A stretch of 64,000 bases of DNA from Hyaloraphidium curvatum SAG 235-1 (lineage: Eukaryota > Fungi > Monoblepharomycota), in NCBI GenBank assembly GCA_025558095.1, contig JAIVFI010000031.1:310001-374000 (forward strand), read 5' to 3'. Both the position numbers and the translations under genes were made by a program. A model generated the notes under the pieces. The model was given only the letters and a program-made list of their open reading frames with translations, was not told the DNA's origin and searched no databases. Of this stretch, positions 1 through 6,682 are shown one piece after another (position 1 is the first letter of the stretch; each line of letters opens with the position of its first letter).

Positions 1-514
<514 letters not shown>

Positions 515-540: not shown

Positions 541-1511
541 ATGGTTGTTGCCGTCGGACTCGGTGGTGACGCACGTCCCCTGCCATCCCTCCTCGACGAT
601 TCCCATCCTGGCCCGACTAGCGCCGAGATGCCTCTTGCTCCTGCTTCTCCTAGGTCTCTCCGTCCCGGGAAGCGACGCCAACACGGAGAAGATCCGCCTG
701 GCGGTCGGGGGACGTGACGAAACTCCGTGCTTCGCCGGAGACCCCGCCCTCGTCGGCCATAGCCAAATGTGGCCGCGGGCCCGCATCCTCGCCGCTCTGA
801 CAAGAGCGGAAGAGTGAGAAACACTTTGCGTCGGGTTCCACTGCCCGGACCGATGAGATTTCCTACTCAGATCGCCCAAGCCGGTCCTGCAACCTCCTTA
901 CACCCTCGCCCCCGGAAACGTCCTGAACGCGACCTGCTGCGGCCCGGGAGCATCGTGGGACGTCGATGTCTATTTCATTCGCGCGAATGAGGTCGGGACG
1001 GCGCACGAGCTGCGGATATCGTACCCCGCGACGGTGGGGCGGCTCCACTCCCGCTCTCGACTTGCCGGCCTGACTCCGGGACGCAGTTCCCGGCGGACTT
1101 TTACCAGGACGTCTTTACTGCGGGCTGTTTCGTGCGGTTCCTGGGCCGGGATGCGGGGTCGCTCGCGGCGCCGACGACGGGCGAGCTCCAGCTTGCCTCG
1201 CACGTGCAGCTCGTTGCAGCAAAGGCCACGGGCGTCGCCCTGCCGGACAAGCACCTTCCCACGCTCGTGCCCTATGATATGGGTGGGTGCTCCGTCGTTC
1301 GTCGGCTCGTGCGGGGAGCTAAACGCGGACGATCCGGGCAGTGCTCGACAGGCTCTACTTCGGGGCCGTGCCCCACTCTTCCCTCCGCCTGATCGCCTTC
1401 CTCGTCGCCCTCATCATCCTGTCCGCCAAGTTCGCCGTGCCTTGGGTCGCCGCACGCATCGAAGCCATCCTCGACGCCCCCGACGCCGGAAACCGCCCCA
1501 AAACAGATTGA
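541..1511 (+). CDS. Type I membrane protein, Pga1-like (GPI mannosyltransferase II co-activator); multi-exon
   Basis: Spliced model gives a signal peptide (CLLLLLLLGLSVPGSDA) then NTEKI, later HELRISYPAT, VPYDM|VLDRLYFGAVP and a C-terminal TM helix (LIAFLVALIILSAKFAVPW). Stop TGA at 1509-1511. Start model needs an intron ending at 620. Confidence 0.55.
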
Positions 1512-1694
1512 CTTGATGGCAGCTTTATTGAGCTTTTAGGAGAGTAAAGGCAATTGTTCGCAGCTCCTCCTCAATATCCCCTTCCCCCCCTCGTCCCCGC
1601 CCGCGCGGCCGCTCCTCAGCCCGCAGGGATGCCCCACAGCCCGCTCACCCCCCAACAATCAGCCAACCCGCCCCAACGCCACACGTCCGGATAT

Positions 1695-3362
1695 CTAGTG
1701 CGAGGAAGCACCCTTGAGCTCGGCGGCCTGCTCGGGGCCAATGACGAGTTTCGGGAGGCCGGCGTCTGCAAGCGCGGGGAGGGTCAGTCGGTGCCGGCGG
1801 AAGATGCACGCAGGGCAACGCACGGTAGTGGTGGTACTCGGGAGGCGAGGGCAGGTTCCACTCGAGGCCGACGGTGGCGAGGGTCTCGGGCTCACGAAGG
1901 TTGCCGTACCGGAACTTGGTGAAGAAGAGCGGGGGCATGCTGCAAACCGGCCGGGATGAGCGAAAATGCGGCCCACGGCCCGCGCGATAACCCACATCTG
2001 GGCCCAGTAGTCGTTGGCGAGGTGGTGGGTGTGGTCCCACGACGGCCGCGGGGCCTTCTCGAGCGCGACGAGGCGGTCGGGCACCTCGGCCGAAACCGGC
2101 CACGCGTCGCGGAACTCGACCGTCTCGACGGTCAGGCCCAGCTCGGCGGCGCGGTTGGCGATGCCGGCCTTGACCTTGGAGGCCAGGGCGGCGCGGTCCG
2201 ACTCGGAGAGGGGGGTGGCGACGCCGGCGACGGCCTCGGCCATGACCTTGGAGGCGTAGGTGACGAGCTCGAGCTCGCCGTCCATGGAGCCGCTGTTGTG
2301 GTGCGAGACCTGGACGAACTAGCGTGAGGAACCGTTCGAATGGGGCGTCGGGGTGCAACACACCTTGGACAGGTCGCTGTACTTGGCGTAGATGACGGCG
2401 TACGCGTCAACGTCGCCAGCTGGAAACGCGAAATGCACCGTCAACGCTGGAATGCGACGCATGCATGCACGGGAACCCACTCTTGCTCTTGGCCTTGCGC
2501 GACAGGACGCCGAGCGTGGTGCCGTGGACCGACTTGACCGCCTTCACCTTGTGGATGAAGGGCAGCAGGACGTTCCAGCCGGGACCGGCGACCTTGGAGA
2601 AGCGGCCGCCCGACTCGATGACCCACTGCTCGCTCGCGGGCACGATGTTGATGAACTGGGGGTGGCGGATACGTCAGCGCCCGAAATCGAGGGTTGCGAC
2701 GCGACGGGGCTGGCGGGATGCCGGCACCGTCCCGGGCAATAAAGGCGTCCAATGCAAAGGCCCGCAGGCGGATTCCGGGCTCCATCCGCGCTTTCCGGTG
2801 CGGATGGCGCCTCCTGGGCCCCGAACCGCGGTGGGTCGACGCGGCCTCCTCCGACCCGCATCCGCCCCGGCATCCCCTCCCGACGCATCCGCGTGATTGT
2901 CCGAGCCGGGACAGCCGATACTCACCCCGGGCGAGGGCTTCTTGCCGTAGTTTGTCGTCGACCAGAACACCCAGGTCTTTTCGCGCTCGGTGATGGCGCG
3001 GGCCTGTGCGACGGGGATGCCGTCGACGAAGGGCACAATGGGAGCCGAGCCGGCGTTCCAGGTCACCGGCTGCTCGACGACGGCGGACGACGACGAGCGG
3101 ATGGCAGCCGACGGGGCGCGGCGGGCCTGGGGAGCGGCGGCGTCAACAGCGAATCCGGGCTGCGGGCGGGGCGCCCTCCGCGTGCAAGCGAGGCGCGCTC
3201 GAGCTGCCAAGGCGGCCCCGCGGCGGGAGCAGCACTGTGCGCGCGGCATCCGGCGGCGGGCCGCGTGGCGCCACGCGGGTCGCGGCGCGCGGAGGGCGGT
3301 CGCGGCGCGGCGGCGGCGCGTACCTGGGCCGTGGCATTGCGGAGCAGGACGCGGGAAGCCAT
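1695..3362 (-). CDS. Mitochondrion-targeted divergent SPFH/band-7 protein with C-terminal Cox1-c motif; 7 exons
   Basis: Presequence-like MASRVLLRNATAQ|ARRAPSAAIRSSSS. SPFH segment FINIVPASEQWVIESGGRFSKVAGPGWNVLLPFIHKVKAV...ELGLTVETVEFRDAWP. Introns 1995-1940 and 1823-1766 give the C-terminus LEWNLPSPPEYHHYHAGLPKLVIGPEQAAELKGASSH*. Confidence 0.8.
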
Positions 3363-3569
3363 CGCACTCGGATTGCCCCGGCGAGGAGGACTGGGGAGGG
3401 AGAAACCGAGCTTGACTCACGCAGACGGCGCCTGGACGGGAGGCGCTAACCGGCGGGCGCCAAAAACCCGCGACTACCAAAACTCCTAACGCGATCGCTC
3501 CAACACACCCCCGCGACGCAAGCGCGTTTCCCGGGCCATCGGAAGGTCCTGCGGTCATCAGACTCCGCA
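3363..3569. promoter_or_regulatory. Probable bidirectional promoter between the two SPFH genes
   Basis: 207 bp separate the divergent start codons at 3362(-) and 3570(+). No individual elements were identified. Confidence 0.45.
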
Positions 3570-5139
3570 ATGGCCACGGCCGTGTCGCACGCCGTGATCG
3601 GCGGGCCCTCGGCCGCCGCGAGGCGGCTCGCACGGTCCCTCGCGGCCGCCGGCCACGCCGCCCTCCGGGAACGCGCGCTACCCGCGTCCTGTCCGCCCGG
3701 CACGCGGGCATTTTCCTCCTCGAACTCTGTGACCCAGTCATGGACGGGCTCCTCGGGCTTTGGCACCGCCACCGCCCGCCAATCGTGGGGCAGCAACTCT
3801 TCGGGCGGATCGCGGTCGGCGCGGCGCCTTCCTTCGAACCTGCCGATCAAATTCGTGCCGCAGCAGGAGGCTTGGGTGGTGGAGAGGATGGGTCGGTTCT
3901 CGAGGATCCTGGAGCCTGGCCTGTGAGCGGGACGCGTCGCCCGGGCCGGGGCGTCGCTGATCTCCGCCCGGATCGCGGATCGCCCGCTGCTGCCCAGTGC
4001 TATCCTCATTCCCGTCATTGATCGGGTACGCTACGTCAAGGTGCTGAAGGAAGTGGCGGTGGAGATCCCCAGCCAGAGCGTGGGTGGTCATCGGGCGAGT
4101 GTCGTTCGGCCTGCTGACTCTAGATCTCGTTGTGGTTCAGGCCATCACCCAGGACAACGTGACCTTGGATCTGGACGGCGTCTTGTACTACAAGGTCGTC
4201 GACCCGTACAAGGTTGGTCCGACCCCGCTACGGGGATCTGCCGCCGGCTGAATGACCCACCAGGCATCCTACGGCGTCGAGGACCACGAGTACGCGATCC
4301 AGCAGCTCGCGCAGACCACCATGCGCGCCGAAATCGGCCAGATGACGCTGGACCGGACGCTCGCGGAGCGCACGCAGCTCAACGAGAACATCGTCAACGC
4401 GATCAACCACGCCTCGGACAGCTGGGGGATCCGGTGCCTGCGATACGAGGTCGGCGCGGACCGCTGCGGTGGCGCCCGTGGTTTCTGACGCCTGCGCTTC
4501 CGTTTGCGGACAGATCCGCGACATCCACCCGCCCGAGAACGTGGTGAACGCCATGCACCAGCAAGTGTCGGCGGATCGGAAGAAGCGCGCGGAGATTGTG
4601 AGCGTCCCCCTTCTCCGCGCTGCGAATCGTCGGCTCACTTTCTTCCTTCCAGCTTGAATCGGAGGGCGCCCGGCAGGCGGCCATCAACGTCGCCGAGGGC
4701 AGGAAACGTGCGATCGTGCTCGAGTCGGAGGGTAACAAGGAGAAGCAGATCAACGCAGCGGCCGGTGGGATTGTCCGCAGCCCCCTCCGAGGTTTGCCGC
4801 TGACGCAAGAACACCCCAGGCGAGGCCGAAGCGATCCAGCTGCGCGCAGCCGCCACCGCGCAGTCCATCCTCCGCGTCGCCCAGGCCATCGCCGGCAACC
4901 CCGCGGGCCGCGACGCCGTGTCCCTCTCCGTGGCGGACAAATACGTCGAGAGCTTCTCGCAGCTGGCCAAGGAGAGCACGACGCTGATCCTGCCCGGGTC
5001 CAACGCTGGGCAGGTGGCGGGGGCCGTGGCAGAGGCGATGGCGGTGTTCGAGACGCTGGCGAACAAGAACGGGGCGAGGCCTGCGATCGTGGATGGTACG
5101 CTGCAGGTCGAGAAGCAGGCGACGAAGCCGGCGCAATAG
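3570..5139 (+). CDS. STOML2: Stomatin-like protein 2, mitochondrial (SPFH + band-7 C-terminal coiled coil); multi-exon
   Basis: IKFVPQQEAWVVERMGRFSRILEPGL, AITQDNVTLDLDGVLYYKV, ASYGVEDHEYAIQQLAQTTMRAEIG, IRDIHPP, AINVAEGRKRA, SLSVADKYVESFSQLAKEST; Arg/Ala-rich presequence. Confidence 0.93.
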
Positions 5140-5359
5140 ATTCCCTGCCAACTTCATGGAAAGCCACCTGTCCACAAGCGGCTGGCGGAACAAGGGCGGG
5201 CCGGAAACTGCTGAATGCAATTTCCTGATCGACATATGTACTTCCGCGCGCCAGTGAAGTTTACGCGACGGGGTCGTGCTGAGTTGGATGACTCGTCGGA
5301 CTGGTTGACGTCAGCGTTTCTGCAACCCTTCTCCCAACGCTCCCCCTTTCTCCCGCGCC

Positions 5360-6682
5360 ATGGCCCCCGTGCAGTTGCTTCTAGCGAGCTTAGTTGCCCT
5401 CTTTGCAGTCCTTCTCGCCGGTGTTCCCGTGTCTGCCGACTGGCTCGGGCTCCTCAAGGACGGCGCGGACCCACCCGAGGCGGCCAGCACCTGGGAAATC
5501 CCATCGCGCGTCGGCAAGCCTCTCCGCGGCTTCTTCCTTCCCGATGCAGCGGCCGACACCGCCCACGGCCCCGGCATCTCCCACCTGGAGCCCGATCGCG
5601 AGCTGCGTCCCCACGCCGCCGTCCCGCTCCTCTCCCACCCCGCAAGGAGGCAGCAGGGCTTGCAGACCCAGGCCGGGCCGAGATCTTGGGGACTGGACCG
5701 AGTGGACGGAAACGAGGATGGGCAATTCCGGTACATCGCGAGCGGAGGCAGCGGGATCACGGTCTACGTGCTCGACTCGGGAATCGCCAGCGAGCTGGAC
5801 GAGTTCGAGGGCCGCGCCACGAAGGGCCCCAACTTCTCCAACGACACGTCCACTACGGACAACGAGGGGCACGGGACGTTCACTGCAGCGATCATCGGGG
5901 GGAAAGAATACGGGGTGGCCAAGAAGGTCAAGATCGTGGGCGTCAAAGTGACGGCCAGCGAAGGCATCGGCCGCGTCAGCGACTTCGTTCGCGGATTGCT
6001 CTGGGTCCTCGATGAAACGAAGAACGGAACCGGCGATCCGAGCATAATCAGCCTGTCCATCGGGACGGTGAGTGAGAGTGACGTGTAGAGGCGTCCAAGG
6101 GGTTGAACGAAAGTCCAGGAGCAAAGCATGCTTCTCGATCAAGCGATGAACTACATCGTGGATCTCGGCATCCCCGTCGTAGCCTCGGCCGGCAACCAGG
6201 GCGAAGATGCATGCAACTGGTCGCCGGGCTCCGCGCTTGCCGTCCTCACAGTGGGCGCCACAAACCGCACGAACGAAGTCGCCACGTATTCCAACTTCGG
6301 GCCATGCGTCAAGATCTGGGCTCCCGGCAGCGACATCGTGTCCATCTTTCCCAACGGTACCGAAAGCGTCAGGACGGGAACATCCTTTTCCAGCCCCCAC
6401 GTCGCGGGAGTCGGTAGCCGTGCGGGCGACGGTCTTCGTGCGGCCTCGTAACATGCCATCCCGCAGGCGCTCGCTCTTTACTGGGGGGAACTGCTTGCGA
6501 ACCGTTCGACAAATGCAACGGGCCAAGATGCGATCAACGCCTTGGTACGTTGTACGTAAAACGAGCCGCAATCCGGTCAACTGATGCTCCCTTTTCAGGG
6601 CGAGGCCGCGACGCCCGGTGTCCTTGGCCTTGGCTTCTTTTCCCGCACTGCAGATCTCTTCGTCAAGACACCGAGCAACTGA
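5360..6682 (+). CDS. Secreted subtilisin-like serine protease (S8, proteinase K subfamily); multi-exon
   Basis: Signal peptide and degenerate propeptide, SWGLDRVD, catalytic triad VLDSG / GHGT / GTSFSSPHVAG, ASAGN oxyanion motif. Last exon ATPGVL...PSN* ends at 6682. Confidence 0.9.

Follow-up and report, generated by a model that had tools for sequence, protein, structure and literature searches.

The nuclear genome of Hyaloraphidium curvatum contains a gene whose product joins a diverged SPFH domain to the C-terminal tail of cytochrome c oxidase subunit 1 (Cox1), and the mitochondrial Cox1 of the same species ends before this tail. Related fusions are found in other chytrid fungi. The nuclear fusion is very probably a functional Cox1-c, the name used for the nucleus-encoded Cox1 tail of protists.

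The gene lies near the start of the window, namely the 64-kb stretch of contig JAIVFI010000031.1 that was analysed, and a canonical SLP-2 gene stands next to it. The features are as follows (window positions).

1695-3362, minus strand: fusion gene, 7 exons, 972 nt coding, 323 aa
3324-3362, minus strand: exon 1, aa 1-13, start of the predicted presequence (about aa 1-25); RNA joint 3125/3323
2926-3126, minus strand: exon 2, aa 14-80, end of the presequence and family-specific conserved block; RNA joints
2950-3039, minus strand: conserved N-terminal block within exon 2, aa 43-72, G-x-P-x4-R-x-[LI]-x3-E-x2-W-x-F-W; family-specific
2481-2655, minus strand: exon 3, aa 81-139, beginning of the SPFH domain; the exon alone matches Band_7 (E 7e-5)
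2364-2419, minus strand: exon 4, aa 139-157, SPFH; followed by the phase-0 intron that is aligned to an SLP-2 intron
1996-2309, minus strand: exon 5, aa 158-262, remainder of SPFH (as far as about aa 228), followed by a Pro-rich linker and the conserved DYW block
1824-1939, minus strand: exon 6, aa 262-301, PPxFF block and Cox1-c motif
1866 (start of L287-E288-W289) and 1833-1831 (H298), minus strand: Cox1-c motif within exon 6
1695-1765, minus strand: exon 7, aa 301-323 plus stop codon, last part of the Cox1-like tail (LPK), with a C-terminal His
3363-3569, 207 bp: region between the divergent start codons, presumed shared promoter
3570-5139, plus strand: canonical SLP-2 gene, 402 aa, 7 exons, six RNA joints; probable parent paralogue

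Public RNA contigs aligned to positions 1450-5300 join all six introns of the fusion gene, and spliced transcripts are recognised because these joints are free of intron and have GT..AG ends. The evidence consists of assembled contigs, and the RNA label of the run is a guess. The last two introns, which the first-pass annotation had placed at 1995-1940 and 1823-1766, are real and exact: the joints at 1939/1996 and 1765/1824 skip 56 nt and 58 nt, respectively, with GT..AG borders when read on the minus strand. Splicing follows the frame that keeps the Cox1-like motif. The protein does not end at ‘GLPKL’, as had been stated; 16 further residues follow, ending ...GASSH. The spliced model equals KAI9009171.1 (323 aa, hypothetical protein DFJ74DRAFT_687250, Hyaloraphidium curvatum) residue for residue. 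Both joints of exon 3 are also present in RNA contigs of a related organism from a freshwater metatranscriptome. One transcript contig covers 3323-3922 and thus crosses the intergenic region; the strand is not readable from the contigs. Furthermore, a low-depth unspliced contig lies over intron 2 (2630-2955). The introns at 1766-1823 and 1940-1995 total 114 nt. If both are retained, the reading frame stays open as far as the same stop, with the frame of exon 6 changed and the motif gone. No RNA contig was found for the form retaining both, and the corresponding intron-retaining ORF of 196 aa at 1695-2285, which skips the motif frame, is rejected because the RNA contigs splice both introns.

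The GC content at third codon positions is 0.94 for the whole fusion gene and 0.90 for the tail. The latter value and the two spliceosomal introns point to an old transfer, with nuclear codon use fully adopted, and not to a recent mitochondrial insertion. A six-frame search of the window finds the Cox1-c motif a single time, and the genome likewise contains one copy.

Residues 1-22 of the protein contain four Arg and no Asp or Glu, a composition that is similar in most full-length homologues. From composition and conservation, residues 1-25 are predicted to form a matrix presequence, and several homologues carry R-x-(S/A/M)-H-x-L at its end. Pfam assigns Band_7 to residues 84-226 (32 bits against a cut-off of 23.6), and the domain exceeds the Pfam cut-off in all five family members tested. 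In the AlphaFold model, built with 37 homologues, the SPFH part reaches block-mean pLDDT values of 86-98, and its fold is matched by Foldseek to stomatin, HflK/C and prohibitin (probability 1.0), as well as to QmcA; the E-value for stomatin is 5e-8. Residues 278-304, which include the Cox1-like motif, are mostly below 50. The absence of the stomatin coiled-coil tail, noted in the first-pass annotation, is borne out by this poorly ordered end, which contains no long helix, and Pfam finds no Band_7_C in the fusion protein. No 19-residue window exceeds a hydropathy of 1.2, which argues that the protein has no membrane span. Between the domains, the linker block (GH-x-L-x2-DYW, PPFF, G-S) is conserved nearly as well as the motif, and the linker length is almost constant. 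Two database matches, one to the Pfam Hermes DBD and one to a cytochrome c552 in the PDB caused by a His tag, are regarded as chance. Many family members end in His (SH, AH or HH; here at window 1698-1700, minus strand), and the end of Acanthamoeba Cox1-c is also His-rich. Such an end is possibly proton-collecting or metal-binding.

The homology of the C-terminal part to Cox1 was reached only by a family profile, because single-sequence searches with exon 5, with exon 6 (PDB) and with the tail (plasmids) gave nothing; a best ESM Atlas match of 0.87 to FloA was treated as noise. With a profile of 29 positions, the seven best PDB matches are all Cox1 C-termini, led by the plant chain 7jro at 497-518 (E 0.0025) and including Paracoccus at 527-548 (E 0.009) and Rhodobacter-type chains at 535-556. 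A longer profile adds actinobacterial Cox1, and no protist Cox1-c is among the profile or PDB matches. Comparison by hhalign gives the tail a probability of 97.2% with a set of 19 Cox1 tails that are intact, and of 0.05% with the Cox1 ends of chytrids. The proposed Cox1-type tail is thereby upheld. When the comparison is limited to fungal tails, the matched region reaches further upstream and takes in a P-x-F-F block that is present in some fungal Cox1 and was not seen in the bacterial Cox1 sampled, which hints at fungal mitochondrial DNA as the source. The third Pro of the SPPPxH-type motif is Asp or Glu in the fusion family. H298 aligns with the His of this motif and is taken to be the equivalent of bovine His503. 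The bovine residue is located close to D91 on the N-side surface (PMC10194837), and the His of the SPPPxH motif has been proposed to control proton entry (PMC5664110).

The mitochondrial counterpart had to be sought outside the H. curvatum assembly, which does not include mitochondrial DNA; no mitochondrial cox1 was found there, and a weak match was noise. Cox1 was reached by way of E. coli cyoB, Sinorhizobium ctaD and a metagenome DNA pattern in which TAG occupies a conserved Leu codon, followed by a protein search in which one metagenome cox1 locus served as the query for named Cox1 proteins. The metagenome scan returned 24 loci of two kinds. Chytrid-type loci reach a stop 58-86 codons past HFLG without the SPP motif (eight complete loci, about six distinct sequences, one of them read with TGA as stop), and green-algal loci from the same scan continue through IEW/LEW..SPP..H and serve as an internal positive control.

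As the first-pass annotation had anticipated, the mitochondrial Cox1 of H. curvatum (NP_150103.1, 505 aa) ends before the motif, closing with an unrelated stretch of 20 residues after helix XII. From GMPRR to the stop it has 67 residues and scores -1.4 bits with the tail profile, against 89 residues and 33 bits for Conidiobolus. The motif is likewise missing from Cox1 of Harpochytrium JEL94 (487), Rhizophydium 136 (505), Blyttiomyces (500), Synchytrium microbalum, Synchytrium endobioticum, and Spizellomyces punctatus and ‘palustris’ (496), and it is present in Conidiobolus, Neoconidiobolus and Capillidium (523-524). Chytrid Cox1 ends score at most 0 bits with the tail profile and those of the latter three genera 28-33 bits. 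In a Cox1 tree of 95 rows, restricted to sequences of at least 440 aa that extend to helix XII, none of the 64 rows on the chytrid side has the tail (SH-aLRT 100, midpoint root), and all 12 rows from other fungi have it. The protein search had a ceiling near 524 aa, above which longer chytrid Cox1s would be hidden, but the metagenome DNA scan and cluster members of up to 535 aa, which have no length limit, agree on the missing tail. No displaced motif was found in six-frame scans of 16 kb of a 19-kb mitochondrial contig from a close relative of H. curvatum, in which cox1 is followed by non-coding repeats and then cox3. Apart from its end, H. curvatum Cox1 retains the D-channel motifs PDMAFPR and HPEVY, and the nuclear genome encodes members of the COX5B, COX4 and COX5A families, which indicates an otherwise conventional oxidase.

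Several further features of these cox1 genes were observed. Many Chytridiomycota Cox1 proteins, although not those of monoblepharids, end in Trp (RW or NW) close to the site of the NPW motif, which lies ahead of the lost tail, and the cut point may have eroded differently between lineages. Rhizophydiales-like cox1, including that of Rhizophydium 136, has Lys in several places where Met is conserved (GKPRR instead of GMPRR), a feature that may reflect codon reassignment, editing or an artefact of the translation table. Two contigs filed as viral are mitochondrial DNA, namely an IMG/VR GVMAG contig with cob, cox2 and cox1 and another with an intron-rich fungal cox1.

The fusion itself was searched with phmmer among 1.84 billion representatives. 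About 35 family members precede the ordinary SPFH proteins, with 26 matches below E 1e-10. The named members beyond H. curvatum are Gonapodya prolifera, Gorgonomyces haynaldii, Entophlyctis and Caulochytrium protostelioides, the other members looked up are environmental sequences, and no named member outside chytrids is among the matches. The protein record of Caulochytrium is partial, and its DNA runs on in frame through the motif. Overall identity within the family is about 20-40%. The tail follows the consensus SLEWxIPSPPDFHHFNxxP, in which PSPP and HH are invariant in 30 rows. The fusion thus spans Monoblepharidomycota and Chytridiomycota, a range beyond that considered in the first-pass annotation, and in the comparison of fusion with truncation proposed there, the lineage with the fusion is the lineage without the mitochondrial tail. 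Both halves are paired within one species in H. curvatum, and elsewhere the pairing is by order or phylum.

A duplicated SLP-2 gene had been suggested as the import carrier. The canonical SLP-2 of H. curvatum is 64% identical to proteins with Band_7 and Band_7_C and is arranged head to head with the fusion gene at a distance of 207 bp. In Gorgonomyces and two environmental chytrid-like genomes, SLP-2 lies directly upstream of the fusion in tandem. The linkage is lost in Gonapodya and Entophlyctis, and in two family-member contigs the gene upstream of the fusion is not SLP-2. The phase-0 intron after K157 of the fusion aligns exactly with the intron after K169 of SLP-2, a coincidence with a roughly estimated chance of about 2%. 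An intron at the K157 position recurs in the Entophlyctis fusion and apparently also in Gorgonomyces SLP-2. Among the SPFH loci of the H. curvatum genome, the fusion has significant matches to SLP-2 only, and its identity to SLP-2 is 26-30%. Conserved adjacency and the common intron position therefore speak for an SLP-2 duplicate as the carrier, as do the best matches. The SPFH tree does not settle the parent: a branch with SH-aLRT 98 sets the fusion family apart, and the family, which has a long stem, could not be placed within SLP-2. Judged by sequence, the fusion probably derives from an SLP-2 duplicate, yet it has neither the coiled coil nor the Band_7_C domain that mark membership of SLP-2.

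The surroundings of the gene pair show further regularities. A DEAH-box helicase gene (Prp43-like; window 1-514, plus strand) is located no more than a few kb from the SLP-2/fusion pair, the same is seen in other chytrid-like contigs, and this arrangement is an old microsynteny. In those other contigs, an LRR gene lies between the helicase and the pair. In Caulochytrium, a highly degenerate SPFH gene of 602 aa (plus strand) is located 2 kb upstream of the fusion and shows about 30% identity to SLP-2 along a short segment. On the other side of SLP-2 in the window, the neighbour at 5360-6500 (plus strand) resembles a secreted subtilisin-like serine protease in its ORF translations.

The conserved N-terminal block has a less certain origin. 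Its P, R, E, W and W are invariant in 13 members, and it weakly resembles the C-terminal linker that follows the beta-helix in gamma-carbonic anhydrases (G-P-x4-R-x-L-x3-E). Matches were obtained in two libraries (PDB, E 0.004; PaaY, E 0.004), and hhalign of the block against gamma-carbonic anhydrase gave a probability of 78% and a score of 34 against a shuffled maximum of 23, for a pair picked after the match had been seen. The alignment covers a linker-like stretch of 20-28 residues only. The block has no hexapeptide repeats and no left-handed beta-helix with Zn-binding His, and no clear gamma-carbonic anhydrase gene was found in the H. curvatum genome. Homology to the anhydrase linker is a rather unlikely, though conceivable, reading of the sequence, and the likeness may be a convergent helix cap.

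Nuclear Cox1 tails are known from protists; Cox1-c was reportedly described by Gawryluk and Gray in 2010. The chytrid fusion shares with Cox1-c of Acanthamoeba (XP_004340336.1), CoxIV of Dictyostelium and the proteins of other protists its nuclear location, a presequence (here predicted), the LEW..SPPxxH tail and the absence of a membrane span. As in these protists, it is paired with a mitochondrial cox1 without the tail, so that both features that define Cox1-c at the sequence level are present. Unlike the protist proteins, it has an SPFH carrier and its motif lies near the C-terminus; the flanks of Acanthamoeba Cox1-c appear unrelated to those of the fusion when compared by eye. With SLP-2/STOML2 (slipin subfamily; bacterial QmcA) it shares a presequence, again predicted, and the full SPFH fold, but it differs in its strong divergence, an extra N-terminal block, the absence of coiled coil and Band_7_C, and a Cox1 tail at the C-terminus. 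A piecewise transfer from organelle to nucleus also resembles that of cox2a/cox2b (chlorophyceans, alveolates) and of rpl2 (eudicots), in other genes and lineages. In such transfers, the nucleus takes over the coding of the hydrophilic part, and the hydrophobic core remains encoded in the mitochondrial DNA (PMC5664110). The chytrid product, in contrast to these examples, keeps a whole folded domain of a duplicated host gene. Two papers from 2017 list split cox1 as absent from fungi/Opisthokonta, animals and plants, and state that no recent functional organelle-to-nucleus transfer has been described in animals or fungi (PMC5664110, PMC5374615). A diplonemid paper from 2025 describes Cox1C and makes no mention of stomatin or SPFH. 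A literature search on chytrids combined with stomatin or split cox1, the scope of which excluded Gawryluk and Gray 2010, returned no paper. Split cox1 is known in protists, and the chytrid fungi are a clade-wide exception to the reviews.

The following course of events would explain these data. The terminal 25-45 codons of mitochondrial cox1, which encode the matrix-side tail after helix XII, would have reached the nucleus in the common ancestor of Monoblepharidomycota and Chytridiomycota, where they may have replaced the coiled-coil half of a tandem SLP-2 duplicate. Mitochondrial cox1 would then have lost its tail after the nuclear fusion arose. The product is presumed to be imported into the matrix by its cleavable presequence, and its tail, poorly ordered alone, would fold into the matrix-face groove of Cox1 that is filled in cis elsewhere. 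This would restore the Glu/Trp/Ser-Pro-Pro/His elements near the D-channel entrance. The SPFH domain would stay attached as the peripheral, membrane-binding body of a complex IV subunit and build no SPFH cage. Its retention and confident folding across orders suggest more than a spent import tag, and the loss of the coiled coil argues against normal membership of SPFH cages. A matrix location of SLP-2 has been reported elsewhere. SLP-2 has, however, been placed on the intermembrane-space side (PMC3986555), and for this reason the side of the carrier is only presumed. The best explanation of the sequence data is that the intact fusion, SPFH domain retained, is probably a stoichiometric, chytrid-specific subunit of complex IV.

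Other explanations fit parts of the same evidence. An accidental or convergent resemblance of the motif to Cox1, with the Cox1 truncation as an unrelated event, might be argued from the shortness of the match (about 22 residues) and its modest E-values (0.0025). Yet the top PDB matches are all Cox1 tails, the family-invariant residues are those conserved in Cox1, and the lineage bearing the gene is exactly the one without the mitochondrial tail; this complementary distribution largely refutes a coincidence, which we regard as extremely improbable. The tail could alternatively stem from an ancient protist nuclear Cox1-c that persisted in opisthokonts, either silent or overlooked, before its fusion to SPFH, with no new transfer in chytrids. 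The patchy distribution in protists was read by the discoverers as possibly one early transfer (PMC5664110), and chytrids branch early among fungi. However, Acanthamoeba Cox1-c has no SPFH domain, carries the motif in mid-protein and shares no flanking block by eye (PMC4500093 supplement), the chytrid tail aligns further upstream with fungal mitochondrial tails (P-x-F-F), and the other fungi sampled have kept the mitochondrial tail, all of which makes an ancient origin unlikely.

The role of the SPFH domain allows two further readings. As a bridge or assembly factor, it would join SLP-2 oligomers while the tail holds Cox1, and complex IV or its assembly intermediates would thereby be tethered to SLP-2 scaffolds rich in cardiolipin. 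SPFH cages are built by the coiled coil and Band_7_C, both of which are gone from the fusion. SLP-2 and prohibitins do affect complex I/IV assembly and bind cardiolipin (PMC3986555), and the long-kept adjacency to SLP-2, head to head in H. curvatum, suggests co-regulation, but this linkage is lost in Gonapodya and Entophlyctis. In addition, the tail is permanent in solved oxidases, so that the mature enzyme would lack it if the role were transient, and a bridging function is a good deal less probable than a subunit. Some tie of the SPFH domain to cardiolipin or SPFH scaffolds may nevertheless exist. Less probable still is that SPFH is merely a carrier from which a protease frees a short Cox1-c peptide for complex IV, SPFH being degraded or working elsewhere. 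The Pro-rich, low-confidence linker between the domains in the AlphaFold model and the association of SLP-2 proteins with inner-membrane proteases (PMC8630662) would agree with such a release. Against it stand the linker block, nearly as conserved as the motif and almost constant in length, and the fact that no conserved cleavage site is evident. Compared with these alternatives, we lean, on sequence grounds, towards the reading that chytrids split cox1 independently of protists and thereby gained a new complex IV subunit composed of an SLP-2 duplicate and the Cox1 tail, with SPFH as a permanent part. The extended version, in which the N-terminal block is a remnant of gamma-carbonic anhydrase and the protein a three-part chimera, has little probability.

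The fusion illustrates a transfer route in which an organellar gene fragment is captured by a duplicated gene whose product is already imported, and the folded domain is then kept. It represents a second, apparently independent cut at the same place of Cox1, which bears on the question of single or multiple splits in protists. It also leads to the prediction of an SPFH domain as a stoichiometric complex IV subunit, for which we know of no precedent. The split is a candidate shared derived character for Chytridiomycota and Monoblepharidomycota, and in these fungi the role of the Cox1 tail becomes genetically testable from the nucleus.
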